Positions 16,153 through 51,560 of a stretch of DNA of 64,000 bases are shown in pieces. The notes below the pieces were generated by a model, which saw only the letters and a program-made list of their open reading frames with translations, had not been told where the DNA came from and made no database searches. Position numbers and translations under genes: made by a program. Numbering within the stretch: the stretch's first letter is position 1; every line of letters starts with the position of its first letter. The stretch covers positions 186,001 to 250,000 of IMG/VR virus record IMGVR_UViG_3300023179_000009. One strand, written 5' to 3'.

Positions 16153-16824
16153 ATGACATTTAAAAAATTTATTGATAGCGTTGATTATGAACATCAAGAG
16201 GAAAGTCTTCTTAAAAATAAACCTCGAAGATACGGCCAGATACTCATGCAAAAACTTCAGGAAATATGGCCTGATAAATATAACAGAACAATAGGAACAG
16301 AGAAGGATCCTTCTTTGGCTTTTGGCAAAGAGGATAATAAAATTATAAGAGACTTTTTGTACAATTTAGAAGCAGCATGGCCTGCCTGTCCCGTTAATTT
16401 GAATAAAGACCAAGTTCGTGTTCAACGACTAGAAAAGAAAATTAAGAAATTACAAAAAAGAAGTAAAAGTCAAAAAGAAAAATTAGATTTTTATCAAAAT
16501 CTTTTAGTTACATTTCCTTCTTTACAAGGATATAATGAATTAAGCAAAAGAAATTTTGAATATGCTAAAAAACTTAGCGAACTACAAGAACAAATAAAAG
16601 AAAAAAATTGGGCAATTAGAGGATTACGAGAGACATTAAATGTTGCTCTTATGATCAGCGACAAAGATTTTGAAATATTTGAAGATTTGCCCAGGCTAAT
16701 TGGCGATTCATTTGTTGCTGCACGGGATTCTGACGGCAAAGCAATCGAGGGCAAGCCTATAATTGAAAAGGCAGTTTGTATATTAAGATCCTTTAGGAAC
16801 AGGATCAAAGATGAAACAAAATAA
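16153..16824 (+). CDS. hypothetical protein, RYGQ domain + coiled coil
   Basis: N-terminal domain shared with 18809..19336. Confidence 0.65.
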   Translation: MTFKKFIDSVDYEHQEESLLKNKPRRYGQILMQKLQEIWPDKYNRTIGTEKDPSLAFGKEDNKIIRDFLYNLEAAWPACPVNLNKDQVRVQRLEKKIKKLQKRSKSQKEKLDFYQNLLVTFPSLQGYNELSKRNFEYAKKLSELQEQIKEKNWAIRGLRETLNVALMISDKDFEIFEDLPRLIGDSFVAARDSDGKAIEGKPIIEKAVCILRSFRNRIKDETK

Positions 16825-20506: not shown

Positions 20507-21448
20507 ATGAGTTGGCAAAAAAAAATAAAATTATTGCGATCTGGCGATTATGAAAGTGGTTGGCCAGAACATAATGATATTGTAGTAGGAACTGGGAATA
20601 ATATTTTTTCTTTGAGTCCGAATTACAACAAACCTGTTTGGAATGGGCAAAAAGAAAATATTACATTATTGATTGATGCTCTTTTTGGCGATGGCGACAC
20701 CATACAGTTTCTTAGATTTGTTGAAAATGCTAAAAAATTAGTTAAAAAAGTAATTTTGCGTTGTAATGAAGAATTTAAAATTTTGTTTCAAGATTTAGAG
20801 GTAGTTGATAAGCAAAAGCAACCTCCTGATTTCGATAAAGTTATTCACATGATGGCTTTACCTAAAGTTTTAAATATTAAAAAAAATGAAATAAAAGGTA
20901 TGCCATATTTGCTTCCAAACTCTTCCGTTACTTTAAACCCGGCAATTCAAGTTTTACCTTTGTTAAAATTTCCAAAAGTAGGAGTCTGCTGGTCCGGTAA
21001 TCCATTTAATGCTCTTGATTATAAAAGATCAATACCAGTTAACTTGCTAGACATTTTGAATATTCATGAAAATTTTAAATTTTTTAGTTTATGTAGAATT
21101 TTTGATCCTCCAAAAAATTGTTTCGATTATCGAAATGCAATGACAGACTGGAACCAAACAGCACACCTAGTTAAAAGTATGGATTTGGTAATCACTGTGG
21201 ACACATCGATAGCTCATCTAGCGGGGTCTATGGGTGTGAAGACTTGGCTTTTGTCGGACCCTGAAGTTGGCGAATGGAGGTGGGGAGATGATCAAAAAAC
21301 AATTTGGTACGATAGTTTACAAATACTTAGAAAGAAAGACGACTGGCAAACTTTACTCTTGGAGGTGAGCGAAGATATAAAAATATTTTTAGAAGATTAT
21401 CAAAAAAATAAAAAAAGAATGCGTTTGCAAACCATCAGCCGTTCTTGA
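20507..21448 (+). CDS. GT9-like (GT-B) glycosyltransferase, TPR-less form
   Basis: GDGDTIQFLRF, VGVCWSGNP, DLVITVDTSIAHLAGSMG, WRW, WYDS. Confidence 0.85.
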   Translation: MSWQKKIKLLRSGDYESGWPEHNDIVVGTGNNIFSLSPNYNKPVWNGQKENITLLIDALFGDGDTIQFLRFVENAKKLVKKVILRCNEEFKILFQDLEVVDKQKQPPDFDKVIHMMALPKVLNIKKNEIKGMPYLLPNSSVTLNPAIQVLPLLKFPKVGVCWSGNPFNALDYKRSIPVNLLDILNIHENFKFFSLCRIFDPPKNCFDYRNAMTDWNQTAHLVKSMDLVITVDTSIAHLAGSMGVKTWLLSDPEVGEWRWGDDQKTIWYDSLQILRKKDDWQTLLLEVSEDIKIFLEDYQKNKKRMRLQTISRS

Positions 21449-21457
21449 GTCTTTTAT

Positions 21458-21805
21458 TTAGTTTTTTTTCAAAACTTTGTTTTTGATTTCTGCTTCTTCA
21501 ACTCTTGAACTCTTTAGTAGCCATTCTAGAAGATTGTTTTTTTCTCTTCTTGTAAAGAGCGTTATTTCATATTGATTATTTGTTTTATCAACCTGACGTA
21601 TTTCTTTGAGTCGGCAATCTACAGGTACGATCTGCTTTAAAGCAAAAAAGGGATCCTCATTATCTTTTAGACTCACCACAACTTTGATTTCTTGTTGAGC
21701 AAATTCGTTATATCCTATTGTTCCCAGCGTAACTAATAAAGCGAGACACGCAATTCCCGCCAGTATTTTGTCCAACACAATATTTAACTTTATTTTATTT
21801 ATCAT
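21458..21805 (-). CDS. hypothetical membrane-anchored protein
   Basis: N-terminal TM; AAGGT SD. Confidence 0.65.
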   Translation of the reverse strand: MINKIKLNIVLDKILAGIACLALLVTLGTIGYNEFAQQEIKVVVSLKDNEDPFFALKQIVPVDCRLKEIRQVDKTNNQYEITLFTRREKNNLLEWLLKSSRVEEAEIKNKVLKKN

Positions 21806-21848
21806 AATCTACCTTTTAATTATTTATCACTAATTTCATAAATATTGT

Positions 21849-22307
21849 ATGTCTTCCTTCAAAGAATTTAATAATTTTATTGACCTCATAATAAATGAGT
21901 TTGATAACAATCAAACTCAGTCAAATCAATTATCACCGCAGCAGCAAAATATTGAAGTTGAAGAAAAACCCTGGTCTGCTAAAAAAGCAGAGATTCTTAG
22001 GTTTTGGAAAGCACTCAAACCTGATATGCCCATAGTTATCCACCCCATGACAGAAAAACCCGAAGGTGTCGAACGATCAAGTTATGGAGAAGACGGAATA
22101 AGAATCTCAGGATCCTATGAGTTTATAATTTCTGTACTTGGGAAATTAAAACAAATTTTGACTTATGAAAATCCAAACACAAGACTAAGACTCATCTTTA
22201 GATCTGTTGACCGCAGCAAATTATTGGTGCCCAATAAAAGGTCATATGTATTTTATATTAATTTAGAAAATAGATCCAAGAAAAGAAAAAGAAAAAATAT
22301 AATCTAA
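21849..22307 (+). CDS. hypothetical protein, probable virion/internal protein
   Basis: MSSFKEF...INE N-terminus; CATAAATA just upstream. Confidence 0.65.
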   Translation: MSSFKEFNNFIDLIINEFDNNQTQSNQLSPQQQNIEVEEKPWSAKKAEILRFWKALKPDMPIVIHPMTEKPEGVERSSYGEDGIRISGSYEFIISVLGKLKQILTYENPNTRLRLIFRSVDRSKLLVPNKRSYVFYINLENRSKKRKRKNII

Positions 22308-22322
22308 AAACTAATATATTCT

Positions 22323-22526
22323 ATGCTTATACAAGATATTAAAAAATTAAGTGATGATTTGGTTGATTTTGAAAAAGATATCAACAACATCTCTGTGAAT
22401 GTTGTTGTTAAAGATGGACAAAAGCCCTCAGATCTTTTGCAGAAAATAAAAAAAATGGGCTACGCAGCTTTCCTTAGAGCAGATGCTTTTGGTATCGAAG
22501 TCGTTATTACTGATTCTTTGAATTAA
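22323..22526 (+). CDS. hypothetical protein
   Basis: Leaderless ORF after ACTAATATA. Confidence 0.55.
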   Translation: MLIQDIKKLSDDLVDFEKDINNISVNVVVKDGQKPSDLLQKIKKMGYAAFLRADAFGIEVVITDSLN

Positions 22527-22609
22527 TTTTTAAATCGATACACGATTGAATAATCTCTGCGATTATTTATCATAAATATATCGTATAAAAAGAGAATCAT
22601 ATACAAGAT

Positions 22610-23359
22610 TTATCTTTGCGTAAAATTTTCATAATCTCCCCAGGATGGGGATTTCATGGATGGTTTTGCATGATGCAAAAGAGGCAAGGATGCCTCAATT
22701 TTTTTTGCAATAACTAAAATATAACTTCTATTTGCTTTTAATTGATAATTTTTATTTTCTTTTTTTATATTAATTTTTTCGAGATAATCTTCAATGTATT
22801 TTGTGTTAGAAAATTTTTGTTTATAATTTTCTTCCTTTATTTCTACCTCAAATTTTGAAAAATATTTAAATATTTCTTGTTTAGAAAAAAATATTTTTTC
22901 TCTAGTTTTTAAATTTAATAAATTATTTAAATCATTTTTTTCTTGAATTCTTAATATTGCTGATCCGTTTGGGCTTAGTCTATTGGTGAAAATATCAGCC
23001 ATACAATTTAAATCAACATAATCTTTCCTGATAGCGCAATCGCTCACTATCACATCAAATGATTTATTTATCTCGCCCCACAGATTTGGATCACCAAAAT
23101 CCCCACACACAAAATCAATCGAAGCATTCGACTCAGAAGCTTTTTCAATTAAACTCTTACATAAATCTATTCCATAAACTTTTTTAAATAACGGTTCAAT
23201 GTATTTTGTTAACCTACCACCAGCACAACCTAAATCAATCGCAATTGATTTTTTGTTTTGGTGTTTTTTGATTGCTTCTTGAAGAATTTTTGGAACTTTA
23301 GTTTTTTTTAACCAATATTGCTCGTCAAGATTTAAGCCATTGGTGGTCGATTTTTCCAT
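22610..23359 (-). CDS. class I SAM-dependent methyltransferase
   Basis: IDLGCAGG, YGIDL, FDVIV. Confidence 0.85.
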   Translation of the reverse strand: MEKSTTNGLNLDEQYWLKKTKVPKILQEAIKKHQNKKSIAIDLGCAGGRLTKYIEPLFKKVYGIDLCKSLIEKASESNASIDFVCGDFGDPNLWGEINKSFDVIVSDCAIRKDYVDLNCMADIFTNRLSPNGSAILRIQEKNDLNNLLNLKTREKIFFSKQEIFKYFSKFEVEIKEENYKQKFSNTKYIEDYLEKINIKKENKNYQLKANRSYILVIAKKIEASLPLLHHAKPSMKSPSWGDYENFTQR

Positions 23360-25494
23360 TTGAAAAAACTATCCGAGTAATGATCGGCTATACGTTTGGC
23401 AATTTCTTTGCCAACCTCCGGTCCCGGTTTTGATAATCCTAATTCTTTTTGTATTTCTTCGCCATTATATTTTGGCATTTCATATTGTCCCAAATGATGC
23501 AGGTGGTCCTTATCGACATCATCGTGTGTTATATGACGAGAACGTGACAATAAATCAATTCTATTTGGCTTTTTAGATATTTCTTGGGCAACCCTACTCA
23601 TCGATTCAGGCGAGGGTTTTTTTGCTGCTTCCCAAGATTTTAAAATAAACGCCACGCCGTCACTCACCTCGTTTGGCCATTCTAGTTTATTTAATTCTGA
23701 GCGAATTTTATCTGGAGATCCGTTTTTTCTCAACAACAAAGCAAGAACTAGAACGGCATGATTGAATCCATTCGTTTTCGTTTGGTGAATTTCTTCGTGA
23801 TTCAAACGATCAACCGATTCCATGTCTAGTTCCATTCCTGGGAACACAGTTGACAGCAGACCCAAAGATTCATAATTTTTTAAATATGAAACCGTATCAG
23901 CAGATTTTTTGAGTCCACTCCAAAATTCTGCTTGTATACGTGGGCCTGTAACGCCATGATTTCTCATGTCTTTATATTGATCTATAGCATCCAGTGTTGA
24001 TTGATCTAAAACGCCCCTTATGTCATCATTGTTATAATAAGAGTGGAAACGAGGAATTCTGGCAATTCTAAGTTTGTCTTCTCCTATCCTTTCAAAAGGA
24101 TCGCCAATCATTCTAACTCGCCAATTTTTGATATCTTCAAATCCTTGACCGCCGCTTGGATCAACAAAAACACCTTCTTCATTGGGCGATGCTGGAATTT
24201 GATAATAAATAGCATTCATGGTTAGATCACGACGCTTGTAATCTGTGTGCATATCTGCCCACCGAACTTTATCAGGGCGACGACCATCGCTATACCCCAA
24301 GTCTTCACGAAAAGTTGCTATCTCGTAATCTTCCCCATTTATGTTTGCAACCATCACTCCAAAAGATTTACCTTTATCAAAATTTTTAATTCCGGCTCGG
24401 TTTAACATATCCTCTACTTGATCCGGAGTCGCATCTGTTGTTAGATCTATGTCTTTTGTTTTGTTTGTATCAAAAGGTTCATCGGGTTTTGTAAAATAGT
24501 GTCTTAAAAAGTCTCTTGGGGCTCCGCCGATTACGTATATCTGGTGTCCGTTTTCTTTAAAAACTTTTGCCAAAGTAAAAACATCTTTTTCCAAAGGTAG
24601 TCTTGCCCTTATTTCGTGTTCTGTTGCTTCTATGAATGTTTTAAATCTTATTCTCGATTCTCCCAGTAGATTTTTAATATCTTCATCATTTAAATTTGGA
24701 AATCTGCCTTTTAAAGCTGATTTGATTATTTCATTAGATTTGCCTTTTTCACGCATGTTTGCAACAAAGCCAACAGGGTCATTAGACATAGGCTTGCTTG
24801 CACGAGCAGATATTTTATCAAGATCTTTTTTATACAAGTGTGCGGTGGTGTCTATACCGCCTAGTCCTTTCTCCGCTGCTGGTGTGTTGCTTTGGGCAAA
24901 TTGTTTTGCTTTTTGCCAAGGTATTCTGCTTTCCCCACCACGGCCCATTCGATCCATCAATAAAAACACCAATAACAATTTAATTTTACGATCTGATTTG
25001 TATTTCCCTTGATCATCTAATAATTCTTTTTTAAGCGATTTGTTTTGAAAACCTTGTTCATCCTTGAGGCTCATGTGGTATTTTATAACCCACCATAAAT
25101 CTTCTTTATCAATCGAGTTGGCTTTGCTGTACATGTTATGCCACGCTGGTCCTAGTCTTTGCATGGCTTTTTCAAAGTTCGCTGGATCTTCATGACCGTG
25201 GGCACTTAACGTTTTCGGATCTAGTGTGTCGCCCTTACCTATATCGTGCAGCAAACCAGCAAGACGCAATATATTCACATCTTCTGAGGTAAAACTTAAA
25301 TCGAGATTAGACAATGGACCATTTGGGTCGTCTTTTTGTTTTTCTTGTAAAATTTTTATAGCTGGCTCCAATGCCGAACGCACCATCATTGTGTGGCGAT
25401 CCACAGACCCTTCGGGGTGGTGCTTAGGATTTTGTGGTACTTTTAATTGTTGTCTCAGCGAGGATTCAACAAGCCATTCATTAAAACTTTTCAT
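23332..25494 (-). CDS. cca: N-terminal HD domain fused to class II tRNA nucleotidyltransferase (CCA-adding/poly(A) polymerase family)
   Basis: HD: HHPEGSVDRHT, LLHDIGK, HM, D. NTase: IGGAPRD, DIDL, EIATFRED, DGRRP, RRDLTMNA, EDKLRIAR. Confidence 0.88.
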   Translation of the reverse strand: MKSFNEWLVESSLRQQLKVPQNPKHHPEGSVDRHTMMVRSALEPAIKILQEKQKDDPNGPLSNLDLSFTSEDVNILRLAGLLHDIGKGDTLDPKTLSAHGHEDPANFEKAMQRLGPAWHNMYSKANSIDKEDLWWVIKYHMSLKDEQGFQNKSLKKELLDDQGKYKSDRKIKLLLVFLLMDRMGRGGESRIPWQKAKQFAQSNTPAAEKGLGGIDTTAHLYKKDLDKISARASKPMSNDPVGFVANMREKGKSNEIIKSALKGRFPNLNDEDIKNLLGESRIRFKTFIEATEHEIRARLPLEKDVFTLAKVFKENGHQIYVIGGAPRDFLRHYFTKPDEPFDTNKTKDIDLTTDATPDQVEDMLNRAGIKNFDKGKSFGVMVANINGEDYEIATFREDLGYSDGRRPDKVRWADMHTDYKRRDLTMNAIYYQIPASPNEEGVFVDPSGGQGFEDIKNWRVRMIGDPFERIGEDKLRIARIPRFHSYYNNDDIRGVLDQSTLDAIDQYKDMRNHGVTGPRIQAEFWSGLKKSADTVSYLKNYESLGLLSTVFPGMELDMESVDRLNHEEIHQTKTNGFNHAVLVLALLLRKNGSPDKIRSELNKLEWPNEVSDGVAFILKSWEAAKKPSPESMSRVAQEISKKPNRIDLLSRSRHITHDDVDKDHLHHLGQYEMPKYNGEEIQKELGLSKPGPEVGKEIAKRIADHYSDSFFKWKNRPPMA

Positions 25495-25571
25495 ATTAAT
25501 ATTTAGTTTTTAGTTTTAAAATTAACCCTACTAATATTCATACATATTTTTGATTTTAAATTGGAGAACTT

Positions 25572-25859: not shown

Positions 25860-26042
25860 ATGTTATTTTTAGTATTTTCGGTAGTTTTATTTTTGTATTT
25901 TGTTGAGTGTTATACTTTTTTAACACAACAACATAATTCTCACAATGTTTTAAATAATATTAATCATTATATTTCAAGTGATTATTTAGTAAAAATTAAA
26001 GGATCAAATAAAAACATAAATTGGGGAAAAGAAGGCTTTTAA
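25860..26042 (+). CDS. small membrane protein ending W-x-x-EGF
   Basis: N-terminal TM; C-terminus NWGKEGF. Confidence 0.55.
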   Translation: MLFLVFSVVLFLYFVECYTFLTQQHNSHNVLNNINHYISSDYLVKIKGSNKNINWGKEGF

Positions 26043-26668
26043 TGACTTTAACATTACAACAAAGAAAATGTCTAGTGCTGAATAAAAATTGGAGACCTGT
26101 TTCCGCAATCGGATTAGACGATGCTATTTGCAAAGTCTTTAGCACATATGCTGACGGCACCCCCAAAGCCACAATAATAGAACCTGAAACTTATCAAACT
26201 TTCACCTGGGCAGATTGGAGTCGATTAGAGCCCAATGAAAATGAAGACAGAATTTACGCTAGTTCATATAGTTTCAAAATTCCTGAAATTATATTGTTAA
26301 GCCGATATGAAAAATTACCCAAGCCAAAACTTAATTTTTCTAGAAGAAATTTATACAAAAGAGATTCAAGCCAATGCCAATACTGCGGTTGTAAACCGGG
26401 AACAGAGGAGTTAACTATAGAACACGTTGTTCCTAGATCTCATGGTGGCGAAACAACTTGGGAAAATTGTGTTTTAGCCTGTGTTTCTTGTAATAGAAAA
26501 AAAGCCGATAGAACACCGGATCAAGCCGGTATGAAACTTTTAAAGCAACCAAAAAAGCCAGAAGGACACTCATTTAGATTTAGTGACTGCAAGCCTGTAA
26601 AATCTTGGCAAGCCTTCCTAGGTCAGGCTTATTGGCTTGTTGAATTAGAAAACAAAAACATTGATTAG
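26042..26668 (+). CDS. HNH endonuclease (McrA-like)
   Basis: LVLNKNWRP, RD..CQYC, TIEHVVPRSHGG, WENCVLACVSCN. Confidence 0.9.
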   Translation: MTLTLQQRKCLVLNKNWRPVSAIGLDDAICKVFSTYADGTPKATIIEPETYQTFTWADWSRLEPNENEDRIYASSYSFKIPEIILLSRYEKLPKPKLNFSRRNLYKRDSSQCQYCGCKPGTEELTIEHVVPRSHGGETTWENCVLACVSCNRKKADRTPDQAGMKLLKQPKKPEGHSFRFSDCKPVKSWQAFLGQAYWLVELENKNID

Positions 26669-26825: not shown

Positions 26826-28661
26826 TTATTTGTTGTCCCAGTAGTCCAACAATCCCAAAACATCTTCCCAATCAACTGACTCTTTTGGGTAATCTCCGGG
26901 ATTGCCGAACAAAGGACGATCTTCTTCTCGTCTTTTTTGTGCTGCTTTGAGTCTGGCCATTTGGGTACTCAACTTGCTTCCGTACATGCTTCCAGTGGGC
27001 GTTCCATCATCGCTTCTGTCTACCTCAGCTAACTCATCTTTGGTCTTAACGTAGATTTTTGTTTTTGGATCTGTGATGTCTGCACCTTTTTCAACTTTAA
27101 AAAAGTTGAATGGTCTTTGATAGGCTTGAACCATCTCTGGTCCATCTTCTTTGCCAATGCCAGAAGACCTGCTTCTGTTGGGGTCTCCCAACTCAAAACT
27201 GCTTCTTTTTCTTGTTGGGTTTCTCATTGGTTGCCTTCCGAAAGGTCTGGCACCCATTGGTTGTTCATCTGCTTTTTTGCGTGTTCTTGAAACTTTGATC
27301 ATGTACGAAACCGCCGCCAAATCAACTTCATCTACTAGTTTTCCTTCAAGGCCACCCTTTAGTCCACCGTCCACTAAACTTGTTAGTTTCTCTGCTAGTG
27401 CTTCGATTGTTCCTTTAAATCCTTGGACTCTTTCTAATTGTTTTTCAAACTTCAAGGCACGAACAATCACAGGAATCATGTCAGGGTTAGATTCTGAAGG
27501 AGCAGCAAGAGCCTGTCTGTAAGTAATGTTATATTCTGGCTCTTCGCCGTCTCTTGATATTCTCAATAAGTTAAGAACATATCTGAAAACTTTTTGAAAG
27601 TCCACAGCAGCCATAACAAGCTCTTGAACTTTGCTTGTTCTTTCTTTTGCCGCTTCGCCTCTTGATCCTTCTAAAGATACTTCAAACTCTCCAGTTTTGA
27701 TTGCTTCTTTCGGACCTTCCGCACTATTATATGTTTGCAAATCTACTTCTTTGTTGTTGACAAAGTATAATGTTTTAACTGGCGGCATGACATAAGGCAT
27801 ATCTAACTCTTCTATGGCAAGACGAGTATAAAAACTGTATGCCGTACCTCTTAAAGCGCCATTATAAAATTCTAAATTCTCCGCTATTCTGCGGAATTCA
27901 TTTTGAGAAAGTGGTTTGCTTCTAGATTTGGCAATTGCCACGTTAGGATCTGGGCCTTTTGGCGTGTTTTGTGCGATTGCGTCTTTATCTAATTCGATTG
28001 GATTGGCACTATCATTTCCTTGTTCTTCTTCGCTTTCGGCTGGAAGTGCATCCTTTATTGCTTCTTCTACGCTTGAATAAACACTTCTTGGATCGGTTTT
28101 TCTTGCTTTGTCATTTAAGTAAGAGAACAGGTCTGTTTCCACACCTTTGTCTTTGTCGTTTGTTTCCTCTCCTGTATTCGGATCCACCAACACTTTCTCT
28201 GCTTGCAAGATGATGGCGATCTTTTTCACACTTTTTGTTTTTTTTCTTGCATTTAAAACTAAATTTGTAAAGCGTTCCCAGGCTTGCTGATATTTCTTTA
28301 AGTTCTCTGTGCGTTGAAGTTCCGCTATAGCTGCTGCTTTTTTCTCTTGTTGCTTTGCTAGTTCTTTTTCGCTGCGTTGATCAACTTGTGATTGAACCAA
28401 AGGATCCACCTCTCTTGAGGGCTTCGATGGTTCTTTCATTTTTTCTAGTTCTTCTGGTGTATAGTCCATCCATTTGCCGTTTACAACCCTGCCTGAATTA
28501 TGACTTCGAATTGTGCCAGCTTCAGGATGAGGATTTTCTTTTGAATATTGGGGCTTTGGCTCGATGGCAGGTTCAACTGTAGCGTTTGGTTCTACTGCTG
28601 GTTCTTTAACAGTTGATTTTTTGGCTTCCAACAATCCCAACATTTCAAAAAAAGATAACAT
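26826..28661 (-). CDS. large hypothetical protein, probable internal virion protein
   Basis: GAGGAG SD; MLSFFEMLGLLEA N-terminus; charged and Cys-free. Confidence 0.7.
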   Translation of the reverse strand: MLSFFEMLGLLEAKKSTVKEPAVEPNATVEPAIEPKPQYSKENPHPEAGTIRSHNSGRVVNGKWMDYTPEELEKMKEPSKPSREVDPLVQSQVDQRSEKELAKQQEKKAAAIAELQRTENLKKYQQAWERFTNLVLNARKKTKSVKKIAIILQAEKVLVDPNTGEETNDKDKGVETDLFSYLNDKARKTDPRSVYSSVEEAIKDALPAESEEEQGNDSANPIELDKDAIAQNTPKGPDPNVAIAKSRSKPLSQNEFRRIAENLEFYNGALRGTAYSFYTRLAIEELDMPYVMPPVKTLYFVNNKEVDLQTYNSAEGPKEAIKTGEFEVSLEGSRGEAAKERTSKVQELVMAAVDFQKVFRYVLNLLRISRDGEEPEYNITYRQALAAPSESNPDMIPVIVRALKFEKQLERVQGFKGTIEALAEKLTSLVDGGLKGGLEGKLVDEVDLAAVSYMIKVSRTRKKADEQPMGARPFGRQPMRNPTRKRSSFELGDPNRSRSSGIGKEDGPEMVQAYQRPFNFFKVEKGADITDPKTKIYVKTKDELAEVDRSDDGTPTGSMYGSKLSTQMARLKAAQKRREEDRPLFGNPGDYPKESVDWEDVLGLLDYWDNK

Positions 28662-28709: not shown

Positions 28710-29093
28710 ATGAAAAGTTTTAATGAATATAAATCGGGAAATAGCATTGGTTCTTTTTTTGGAAAATCATTCGCTGTAAGGCAAAATGCTCATATTTTGC
28801 ATTTATCTTCCAAAAGTTATGCAGAACACAAGGCTTTAGGTTCATTTTACGAGCAACTAACAGACCTTACAGACCAGTTGATTGAAACCTATCAAGGTCA
28901 ATATGGCTTGGTTGAAGTTGATGTAGCTGTTTCAAAAGAAAAAAATGCAGTTTCTCTTTTGAACGATTTTGCCGAGGATACCATGAATTCTCGTGATTTG
29001 TTTGATAAAAAAGATACTCATTTACACAACATTTTAGATGAAATATTGAGTTTAACTTATCAAACTCTTTATAAATTAAAATTTCTCAAATAA
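28710..29093 (+). CDS. ferritin/Dps-like four-helix protein (DUF5856-like)
   Basis: H..HL...SYAEHKALG.FY...D..IETYQG; YKLKFLK; MKSFNEY start. Confidence 0.75.
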   Translation: MKSFNEYKSGNSIGSFFGKSFAVRQNAHILHLSSKSYAEHKALGSFYEQLTDLTDQLIETYQGQYGLVEVDVAVSKEKNAVSLLNDFAEDTMNSRDLFDKKDTHLHNILDEILSLTYQTLYKLKFLK

Positions 29094-50098: not shown

Positions 50099-50907
50099 AA
50101 AAAAAATTAACTTTTGTTTTGATGACCTGCGGTGAACTTGCGGAGAAAAAATGTGTAGAGGCTATCAAGCCCCATCTTCATGAGGTCGAATTTTTTGAAG
50201 TTAGAAATGTTTTTCCGCAAATAAAAGCTTTGAATCAAATGATAAAGAAAGTCAAGACAGACTTTTTTATTCCTTTAGATGCCGATATTGTACTTGATAA
50301 AGATGCTTATCCCAGAATCAAAAATGCGATAAATAAAAACGAACACGATCCAAGTTGGCATTCGATTCTTTTTCCTTTGTATGACACACTTACAGAGAAA
50401 AGGATACTGGCATTAAAGATTTTGAGAACTAAAGTGATGAAAAAAAATGTTTTCAAACAAAGCACAACGCCCGATGTTGAACATTATCAAAGATTGACCA
50501 GTCTGGGGTATACTTGTATACATGATTATCTAAATCAAAGAACAATTGGAAAACACATAGTAGCAGGAAAACATTTTTGTTATCATAAATTTAGAGATGT
50601 TTATCAAACTTATAGAAATTATAATTTTGAGTGGGATAGTGGGGTTTTTATGGGCGGAAGCGACTTAAGAAGTCACGCAAAAGCACATTATGATTTTTTT
50701 ATGAAAAAATGGTCAAAAACTGGCAATAAAGACTATCTTCATTGTATTGCTGGTATGATGGACGGAATATTATCGCCCGTTGAAAATAAATCTAAAACTT
50801 TAAAATCAAAAAAATATAATATAAAAACAAAATGGGCAATTCATGCCTTTTTAGACTGGTATATGGCACCTTTATCGACTTCCAAATCAGCCAGTATGTT
50901 GTTCTAG
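50095..50907 (+). CDS. GT2-like glycosyltransferase
   Basis: ALNQM, FIPLDADIVL. Confidence 0.65.
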   Translation: MKKKLTFVLMTCGELAEKKCVEAIKPHLHEVEFFEVRNVFPQIKALNQMIKKVKTDFFIPLDADIVLDKDAYPRIKNAINKNEHDPSWHSILFPLYDTLTEKRILALKILRTKVMKKNVFKQSTTPDVEHYQRLTSLGYTCIHDYLNQRTIGKHIVAGKHFCYHKFRDVYQTYRNYNFEWDSGVFMGGSDLRSHAKAHYDFFMKKWSKTGNKDYLHCIAGMMDGILSPVENKSKTLKSKKYNIKTKWAIHAFLDWYMAPLSTSKSASMLF

Positions 50908-51560
50908 GATTGATAGGGCATTGATCCAAAATTAGGAACATTAGAACTGGAAAGTGCGGTATTGACAACATTCTTGACAGTGTTTTCTACACCACCGGTC
51001 AGTTGATTTTGTTTTTCAAATTTTCTTTCTAAATCTATTGATTTTCTTTTTGTTTCTTCCATCATTTGTTTTAATTTTTTGGTATCCAAACTATAAAAAG
51101 TTAACATCCCTCCTCCTTTTGGGTTTGGGGATTGATATCTTTTCATTATATTCATATTAATGGCTATTCCAAGTTGATTTGACTTTATCGAAGGATATCT
51201 GCCGATTACATCTTTTTCCGGCATTTGGTATAAAATTCCTGTTTTGGGATCAAAATCTATGTCTCTCATATAATTTTCTGCATTTTCTTCTCGTCCATCA
51301 CTTTTGGTTTTTTGTCTTATTTCCCAAGTTGCGTAAGCATTCTCAGCCAGTGATGCTAATTTATCTAGAAGATCTTTATTTTGCTCTAGTTGTTTTTTTT
51401 CAGGGTTTGTTTCTCTTTGAAATTGTTGTAATTGACCTAGCGATTTAAAGCCACCCACTGGAGCTTTTGTCGGATCATATTTGTCGCCCATGTCGGGAAA
51501 CTGAAAGTGACCGCTGTAGTACACTTCATTCAAATAAAAAAATTCACGAAATTTTCTCAT
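50904..51560 (-). CDS. hypothetical protein with capsid-targeting-like N-terminus
   Basis: MRKFREFFYLNE; CTATATA just upstream. Confidence 0.65.
   Translation of the reverse strand: MRKFREFFYLNEVYYSGHFQFPDMGDKYDPTKAPVGGFKSLGQLQQFQRETNPEKKQLEQNKDLLDKLASLAENAYATWEIRQKTKSDGREENAENYMRDIDFDPKTGILYQMPEKDVIGRYPSIKSNQLGIAINMNIMKRYQSPNPKGGGMLTFYSLDTKKLKQMMEETKRKSIDLERKFEKQNQLTGGVENTVKNVVNTALSSSNVPNFGSMPYQS

Follow-up and report, generated by a model that had tools for sequence, protein, structure and literature searches.

The fusion protein and its domains

The window analysed here, a stretch of 64,000 nucleotides (positions 186,001 to 250,000 of the IMG/VR virus record IMGVR_UViG_3300023179_000009), encodes a 720-residue protein in which an HD domain is followed by a class II tRNA nucleotidyltransferase (NTase) and which carries two similar short peptides, hereafter called tags, one at its N terminus and the other at the junction of the two domains. 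A first-pass annotation of the window by a model had placed this gene at positions 23332-25494; the coordinates are retained and the strand is corrected to minus, the plus-strand frame being full of stops. The parts of the gene are given below in window positions, with a slash marking a bond at which cleavage is known or proposed.

23332 to 25494, stop codon included, minus strand: open reading frame (ORF) of 720 residues, made of tag, HD domain, junction tag and class II tRNA NTase
25465 to 25494, minus strand: N-terminal tag MKSFNEWLVE (residues 1-10) followed by S11, similar to the T4 capsid-targeting sequence, with proposed cleavage after E10
24664 to 25464, minus strand: HD phosphohydrolase domain (residues 11-277), with the Pfam HD core at residues 67-157 (25024-25296)
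24619 to 24663, minus strand: junction peptide GESRIRFKTFIEATE (residues 278-292), relic of the 5' untranslated region and N-terminal tag of a former CCA gene, with candidate cleavage at LLGE/S and FIE/A
23335 to 24618, minus strand: class II tRNA NTase (residues 293-720; head, neck, body and tail), motifs A-E all present

The protein begins with MKSFNEWLVESS. Pfam matches place the HD domain (PF01966, residues 67-157, 26.8 bits for a cut-off of 22) ahead of the PolyA_pol head domain (PF01743, residues 319-460, 81 bits for a cut-off of 23), which bears out the observation in the first-pass annotation that the domain order is the reverse of the bacterial one. PHROG 2244 (tRNA nucleotidyltransferase) spans residues 316-700, equivalent to positions 2-378 of the 392 of its profile, and the class II motifs are found at residues 323 (GGAPRD), 348 (DIDLTT), 421 (RRD), 445 (motif C, DPSGGQGFEDI), 472 (EDKLR) and 519 (RIQAEF), with motifs A-E invariant in an alignment of 57 sequences. 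The best Protein Data Bank matches of this half are CCA enzymes (2e-23 to 3e-18), poly(A) polymerase reaching only 1e-8. All NCBIfam equivalog scores nevertheless fall under their cut-offs (e.g., 131.5 versus 290), which indicates a diverged member of the CCA-adding enzyme family; the E. coli-type Cca model NF008137, with a cut-off of 451, gives 61 bits, and its match is confined to its positions 2-212, the NTase head.

In the HD half, residues H26, E28, G29, H34, H83, D84, G86, K87, H101, H140 and D181 are invariant among 51 sequences, so that the metal ligands (H34, H83-D84, H101, H140 and D181) are all kept. A structure model of this domain alone has a predicted local distance difference test score (pLDDT) of 93.3, and its top fold matches are all HD-fold proteins (SAMHD1, YhaM, CC-adding enzyme, GlnD), although they are weak, with E values of at least 1e-3 and template modelling (TM) scores of at most 0.46. 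The nearest, equally weak (E 1e-3, TM 0.46), are HD domains of CC- and CCA-adding enzymes. The AlphaFold model of the entire protein, built on 115 sequences, has a mean pLDDT of 93.4 and a confident two-domain architecture. Its sole poorly defined stretches are residues 1-10 (mean pLDDT 52) and residues 280-291 (below 50), that is, the two peptides, the second of which lies precisely where the last HD helix (270-277) gives way to the first NTase strand (294-297).

Conservation of the two peptides

HD-NTase fusions of full length numbered about 45 in a database search, with identities of 95% to about 32%, and all are metagenomic; 43 of them (95% to about 33%) were aligned. Catalogued phages lack the fusion: of 138 records, not one reaches a coverage of 80%. 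The N-terminal consensus of the 43 homologues is M-x-x-F-x-x-W-[LI]-x-E-S-S, with F4 kept in 37/41, W7 in 38/42, L or I at position 8, E10 in 39/43, S11 in 33/43 and S12 in 38/43. At the junction the consensus is E-S-x-x-x-F-[KR]-x-F-x-E-[SA], with E279 in 39/40, S280 in 29/37, F284 in 43/43, K or R285 in 40/43, F287 in 42/43, E289 in 42/43 and S or A290 in 36/43. Both peptides reported by the first-pass annotation are thus real and conserved, also in the light of its own warning that a motif missing from homologues would speak against its proposal. Its alignment of the second peptide has been changed to [M->I]RFKTFIE/A, with the former Met at I282, and a third candidate cleavage site, LLGE/S, lies just ahead of the FIE/A site.

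The presence of invariant aromatic and acidic residues within a segment modelled as disordered is the signature of a short linear motif and not of a decaying relic. The tag acts at the protein level: even in homologues of only about 33% identity, the internal disordered linker keeps F284, F287 and E289 unchanged or almost so, and the positions of the tag swap among aromatics (W/F) and aliphatics (L/I/M) and do not hold to fixed codons.

Origin of the fusion

The two halves of the protein also exist apart. The search for split HD and CCA genes, each with its peptide, that the first-pass annotation had recommended returned both kinds among the relatives. Nineteen stand-alone HD proteins (265-321 residues, 31-66% identical) start with the first peptide, as in MKKFQEWLAESSL and MLSFMEWLKESSL, and terminate immediately ahead of the GES at the junction. 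Dozens of stand-alone CCA enzymes (about 400-460 residues) start with M-x-F-[KR]-x-[FW]-L-E-[NT]-x-E-E; these N-termini align column for column with the junction peptide, their Met corresponding to I282 of the query. In the fusions, residue 282 is Met in 12/36 and Val, Ile or Leu in 18 more. The linker DNA, CTG GGA GAA TCG AGA ATA, matches ctgggagaaaacATG at the same place in a stand-alone CCA gene, which identifies L-G-E-S-R-I as a read-through Shine-Dalgarno sequence plus a mutated start codon.

These comparisons demonstrate, at the level of sequence, that two once-separate genes, each with its own N-terminal peptide, have fused, as the first-pass annotation had supposed for the proteins. 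The tagged HD gene lost its stop codon, and its frame then ran through the ribosome-binding site and start codon of the tagged CCA gene. With the old ribosome-binding site and start codon still legible, the locus is an unusually clean record of two genes becoming a possible polyprotein. As for adjacency of the genes before fusion, no CCA gene was found within 6 kb of three stand-alone HD genes on three contigs.

The tag across the phage genome

The window is part of a 458,813-bp virus record of 35% G+C, estimated to be 91% complete. At least 36 otherwise unrelated ORFs of this phage start with M-x(0-4)-[FY]-x-x-[FWY]-[LIVMF], usually with a Glu a few residues on, so that the tag is a modular, genome-wide feature and not a peculiarity of the HD-CCA protein. 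A loose pattern matches 44 of 881 first-ATG frames, compared with 16.4 +/- 3.9 for shuffled N-termini. The T4-derived pattern MK[ST][FY][QN]E[FWY][LIV]xE occurs at three ORF starts for 2e-5 expected, and nowhere else in the six frames. A strict junction-type pattern occurs four times in ORFs of at least 100 residues, three times at residues 3-4 of other proteins and once at residue 284 of the fusion. The shared form is a short amphipathic peptide, aromatic-x-x-aromatic-aliphatic-(x)-Glu-Ser/Ala.

Many tagged ORFs are small orphans, rich in Gly and Pro past the tag; the carriers also include a flavin mononucleotide (FMN) reductase and three consecutive ORFs 4 kb from the capsid gene. Among the tagged or tag-like ORFs are the following, the last two in genome coordinates (G000:C1) and all others in window positions.

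16153 to 16824, plus strand: tagged ORF, MTFKKFIDSVD..., 223 residues
18196 to 18792, plus strand: tagged ORF, MKNFNEWLNES..., DUF5662, 198 residues
18809 to 19336, plus strand: tagged ORF, MISFPEFVEKV..., 175 residues
21849 to 22307, plus strand: tag-like ORF, MSSFKEFNNFI..., 152 residues, TAAATA box upstream
26826 to 28661, minus strand: charged protein of 611 residues, starting with the tag variant MLSFFEMLGLLE/A
28710 to 29093, plus strand: tagged ORF, MKSFNEYKSG..., DUF5856, first 19 nucleotides identical to those of the HD-NTase gene
50904 to 51560, minus strand: tagged ORF, MRKFREFFYLNE..., 218 residues, TATATA box upstream
G000:C1 27016 to 27384, minus strand: tagged Arr-type (rifampin-ART family) ADP-ribosyltransferase, 122 residues, 36.7 bits for a cut-off of 25, LYHGT motif
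G000:C1 about 378772 to 380262, minus strand: tagged second NTase paralogue, MKKSFVEFKILKES, 496 residues, PolyA_pol head at 60 bits after a 90-residue extension

The Arr-type enzyme recalls the packaged Alt enzyme of T4; a second tagged ORF, with SLYHGT, lies at G000 361187-361795. The second NTase paralogue has N-V-E in place of the expected catalytic D-x-D, in a layout orthologous to that of the tagged CCA enzyme of LR756511; a split arrangement with one CC-adding and one A-adding enzyme is possible. LR756511, the nearest GenBank record, is a 595-kb uncultured phage with a capsid protein 78% identical to the present one, and it carries other tagged ORFs in addition to its tagged CCA enzyme, which starts with MRTTFLEFMGLKEA. 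The CCA enzymes of six cultured phages outside the clade (Myrna, DSS3P8, GAP32, Atu_ph07, Kabachok and R16F) start directly at the first helix of the head domain, with no extension of this kind, which marks the tag as an addition that does not belong to the enzyme fold.

A larger group of phage CCA enzymes in IMG/VR (loci L050-L117) has a different conserved extension, M-K-x-x-I-K-Q-I-L-R-E-G-L-[IV]-x-E, just before the catalytic domain. Further phage CCA extensions read ...AGLLxE, and both kinds of extension end in L-x-E.

A promoter-like box and shared DNA at tagged starts

The start of the HD-NTase gene is preceded by a short box.

25500 to 25505, minus strand: TAAATA box, 5 nucleotides upstream of the ATG of the HD-NTase gene, without Shine-Dalgarno sequence, resembling a T4 late promoter

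Its sequence and position suggest a T4-like late promoter giving a leaderless or near-leaderless transcript. A TA[AT]ATA box 3-6 nucleotides before the ATG, without Shine-Dalgarno sequence, is found in about 40% of the tagged genes, and 17 or more further genes of the phage (G000) start in this way, e.g., at 72633-, 72666+, 150561- and 367157- (sign for strand). Tag and box are strongly associated genome-wide (counts 15/60/21/2651, odds ratio 31.6, p 3e-15), and 15 to 19 of the 37 ORFs with a box before their ATG are tagged. In the capsid gene, however, TAAATA lies just ahead of the ATG together with a Shine-Dalgarno sequence, so the box is no proof of a promoter.

Some starts also share DNA. 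A nearly identical block of about 135 bp precedes two unrelated genes, at G000:C1 about 27270-27410 (minus strand) and about 455200-455335 (plus strand), and ends inside the tag; it contains an inverted repeat (CCCAGTCCCC..GGGGCTGGG), TATATA, a ribosome-binding site and the first 8 codons (MKSFNEW), and looks like a mobile regulatory and tag cassette. The first 19 nucleotides, ATGAAAAGTTTTAATGAAT, are identical in two divergent genes 3.2 kb apart, the HD-NTase gene (25476-25494, minus strand) and the DUF5856 gene (28710-28728, plus strand). From the block and these common starts it follows that the tag also travels as DNA. In assemblies of other samples, contigs end at the shared 19-nucleotide repeat.

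Likeness to capsid targeting in T4

The capsid-targeting sequence of T4 has been described for a handful of small internal proteins in T-even coliphages. Through this peptide the internal proteins attach to the scaffolding core; the prohead protease then cuts it off, and on its own it is enough to have foreign proteins packaged (PMC8442874, PMC5694885, PMC3012670). A comparison with the T4 genome (NC_000866), in which ipII and ipIII start with MKTYQEFIAE/A and gp24 with MAKINELLRE/S, as against MKSFNEWLVE/S here, shows that the resemblance noticed by the first-pass annotation is real. The IPII/IPIII sequence and the gp24 propeptide share with the tag a 10-residue, N-terminal, amphipathic form, M-K-[ST]-aromatic-x-E-aromatic-aliphatic-x-E, followed by Ala or Ser. 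In both phages several unrelated proteins carry the tag, and both have an S77 protease, a gp22-like scaffold and gp23. The head genes of the present phage follow the T4 order, with a Peptidase_S77 prohead protease (88.5 bits, G000 440504-441199), a gp23-type capsid protein (288.7 bits), a portal and a coiled-coil scaffold-like protein, so that the T4-type machinery required by a tag of this kind is encoded. The capsid protein has LMNE/A at the place of the T4 gp23 maturation site FLTE/A. An S77 protease occurs in 4 of 5 near-complete IMG/VR genomes with related CCA genes, and the CCA enzyme of the fifth is untagged; these genomes are few and non-independent.

The differences from T4 are also clear. 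The tag is found here on at least 36 ORFs, including large enzymes, whereas T4 has it on three small basic proteins; the spacing of the Glu varies, and one copy is internal, at a domain junction. Packaging and cleavage in the present phage are putative. In giant phages of the phiKZ/SPN3US type, many head-internal proteins are cut after Glu by a prohead protease related to that of T4 (PMC5694885, PMC7411985), but the propeptides of these ejection proteins have 80-130 residues and another sequence, whereas the tag described here is of the short T4 type.

A possible injected tRNA end-repair enzyme and its alternatives

Taken together, these data lead us to propose, tentatively and with a confidence that stays somewhat short of probable, that the HD-NTase protein is a bifunctional tRNA 3'-end enzyme of a T4-like freshwater phage, tagged for capsid loading and injection. 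By analogy with T4, the tag may well be the capsid-targeting propeptide of this phage, a question on which we are evenly divided; it is the best reading of the tag since a T4-type protease and core are present. Cleavage at the junction, at LLGE/S and/or FIE/A, with release of two enzymes as supposed in the first-pass annotation, seems rather doubtful. Yakunin et al. reportedly found in 2004 that the HD domain of E. coli Cca has 2',3'-cyclic phosphodiesterase, 2'-nucleotidase and phosphatase activities; by analogy, the HD domain of the phage probably heals 2',3'-cyclic-phosphate or phosphate ends, and a common substrate is suggested by the fact that about 45 homologues have the HD domain joined to a CCA enzyme.

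In this scheme, the tag would attach the protein to the scaffolding core inside the prohead and the S77 protease would cut after Glu, at E10/S11, which is certainly plausible, and possibly at E279/S280 and/or E289/A290. The head would take up the mature enzyme, whole or as two halves, for injection along with the DNA; once in the cell, it would restore tRNA 3' ends ahead of any phage gene expression, the HD domain healing the ends and the NTase then rebuilding CCA. The 12 tRNAs of the phage itself would also receive their CCA from enzyme synthesised in the cell. A role of the injected enzyme against host defences is speculative. In its widest form, the proposal would have this megaphage load several dozen tagged proteins into its head, among them the HD-CCA polyprotein, the second NTase and the ADP-ribosyltransferase, and inject them, with the HD-CCA protein cut at its internal tag, as a pre-emptive counter to tRNA-targeting defences; we hold this to be unlikely as a whole. 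If the tag did work as in T4, it would offer a readout, from sequence only, of the injected proteome of a giant phage, and tRNA end-repair enzymes active before phage transcription would be a new class of injected cargo. Should the capsid reading be wrong, one would still have to explain a conserved, modular N-terminal peptide that goes together with a promoter-like box right at the start codon.

Several observations weigh against loading and injection. Among the tagged ORFs, the Glu follows the hydrophobic pair at varying distances, and Ala or Ser comes next in only about one third of them, which makes uniform processing doubtful. Tagged and untagged ORFs are similarly basic (median isoelectric point (pI) 7.7 versus 6.9, with 46% versus 43% above pI 8), and this lack of a basic bias is unlike T4 internal proteins. 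At least 36 packaged species are many for a T4-type head. The T4-like jumbo phages GAP32 and Atu_ph07 have CCA enzymes without tag, and the phage described here encodes an Rnl1-type RNA ligase (87 bits, G000:C1:270872-272023, plus strand) and an Rnl2-type one (75 bits, 280146-281210, plus strand), both of them untagged. It has 12 tRNA genes (Thr x2, Pro, Gly, Cys, Met, Arg, Leu, Ile, Asn, Lys and Glu) at G000:C1 161547-343846, none of which (0/12) encodes the 3' CCA, and maturing these tRNAs is a sufficient, ordinary function that needs no injection. The link between tag and box means that part of the N-terminal conservation could serve expression, and some of the sharing of the tag is by DNA copying, as the 135-bp block attests. 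A gp55 late sigma factor was not found in a single-sequence search of the genome with the T4 protein. The points on the box and on DNA copying support an expression-cassette component, yet they cannot explain the conserved internal copy.

The tRNA genes without CCA lead directly to the alternative that the protein is an ordinary cytoplasmic enzyme, adding CCA to the 12 phage tRNAs and perhaps repairing ends, with a peptide that is a modular signal unrelated to capsid loading, such as for docking on a common partner (a chaperone, the ribosome or RNA polymerase), for localisation or for controlled turnover. We know of no alternative receptor for the tag, which counts against this option. In its favour, the tag is carried by enzymes with no obvious need for injection, such as the FMN reductase, the Glu position is variable and tagged proteins have no basic bias; moreover, CCA enzymes are common in jumbo phages, where their interpretation as enzymes of RNA repair or maturation involves no packaging (PMC7824862). 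It leaves aside, however, the agreement, at nearly every position and including the Glu-Ser/Ala, of the tag with the T4 capsid-targeting sequence and the gp24 propeptide, and the fact that the phage encodes the matching protease and core. We consider a purely cytoplasmic enzyme possible but unlikely, bearing in mind that packaging and a cytoplasmic role are not mutually exclusive.

There are two further alternatives. The box 3-6 nucleotides before the ATG might yield leaderless transcripts whose A/U-rich first codons (ATG AAA nnT TTT AAn GAA ...) are kept for initiation and spread by recombination, the peptide itself having little function. This would account for the strength of the tag/box association (odds ratio 31.6, p 3e-15), for the 15 to 19 tagged ORFs among the 37 with a box before their ATG, for the 135-bp block (stem-loop, TATATA, ribosome-binding site and first 8 codons) before two unrelated genes and for the identical 19-nucleotide starts at 25494 (minus strand) and 28710 (plus strand). 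It is nevertheless improbable as a full explanation: the peptide is conserved inside the fusions, about 850 nucleotides from the 5' end, with F284, F287 and E289 invariant or nearly so in 43 homologues; what is kept are residue classes (F/Y, W/F/Y, L/I/M/V) and not codons, and the TGG of Trp is not A/U-rich; many tagged genes have a normal Shine-Dalgarno sequence and no box; and the TAAATA of the capsid gene comes with a Shine-Dalgarno sequence while the single-sequence search returned no gp55 homologue. Alternatively, the junction might mark internal initiation instead of proteolysis, the Gly-Glu of the linker being a working Shine-Dalgarno sequence (GGAGA) 6-7 nucleotides before the old Met position, so that both the fusion and a free tagged CCA enzyme would be made. 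The linker DNA reads GGGAGAA-N6-ATA in the query, AGGAGAA-N6-TTG in the homologue P0010 and GGGGAAGGA...ATC in P0032, and a Met or another aliphatic residue at position 282 of most fusions fits this idea. Yet ATA here and ATC in P0032 are both very poor start codons, the ATG is kept in only one third of the fusions in spite of the (near-)invariance of F284, F287 and E289, and [LIV]-[GK]-E-[SN] also fits the N-terminal protease pattern L-x-E/S. Internal initiation is therefore possible in homologues that keep ATG or TTG and unlikely in the present gene with its ATA codon; as a general account of the junction we give it very little credence.

Comparison with known enzymes

Our literature searches found no paper combining capsid targeting with CCA-adding enzymes or tRNA nucleotidyltransferase. 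As in E. coli-type Cca, a class II NTase and an HD domain are joined in one polypeptide, and the nearest folds of the phage HD domain, weak matches though they are, are HD domains of CC- and CCA-adding enzymes. By contrast, the domain order is reversed, the phage NTase has a full body and tail of its own in place of an HD tail, the phage HD domain is very diverged (TM below 0.5), and the fusion arose independently, from two phage genes. The stand-alone class II CCA enzymes (Bacillus/Planococcus CCA, human TRNT1) and PHROG 2244 match the C-terminal 428 residues end to end, but lack the N-terminal tag, the HD domain and the junction tag.

T4 Alt is an ADP-ribosyltransferase that is packaged, processed by the protease and injected. 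It is a core component of T4 (PMC5694885) and offers a precedent for enzyme cargo in a T4-type head; one tagged ORF of the present phage is an Arr-type ADP-ribosyltransferase. The enzyme class of the HD-NTase protein is different, and its loading we infer from sequence. T4 Pnk and Rnl1, in turn, repair tRNA that the PrrC anticodon nuclease has cut. A review covers RNA repair in jumbo phages (PMC7824862). The T4 pathway for tRNA repair is phage-encoded, as that of the phage studied here would be, which also has Rnl1- and Rnl2-type ligases. However, Pnk and Rnl1 are made after infection and act on anticodon loops, whereas the present enzyme would act on the 3' end and may enter the cell ready-made, by injection. 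RtcB, also looked for in the genome, was not found. An ORF of 581 residues in the head region (445223-446968) gives a weak PNK3P signal.

Genomic surroundings

The HD-NTase gene lies in a region rich in glycosyltransferases and methyltransferases (20507-23359 and much of 29000-56000), as it does in the relative L033, and the neighbours of the fusion in relatives are assorted methyl- and glycosyltransferases. A methyltransferase gene (22610-23359) overlaps its 3' end by 28 nucleotides. This methyltransferase was considered as a Hen1-like RNA-repair partner and rejected, as it has only generic S-adenosylmethionine-methyltransferase matches and no conserved synteny among relatives. On the other side, an HNH endonuclease (58.7 bits; 26021-26668, plus strand) lies between the HD-NTase gene and the tagged neighbour of 611 residues.

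The DNA of this uncultured phage is found again in freshwater and lake metagenomes of the years 2011 to 2025. A lake metatranscriptome contig of 273 nucleotides, the sole match of its kind and possibly DNA carry-over, is identical to window positions 24534-24806, across the HD/NTase junction.

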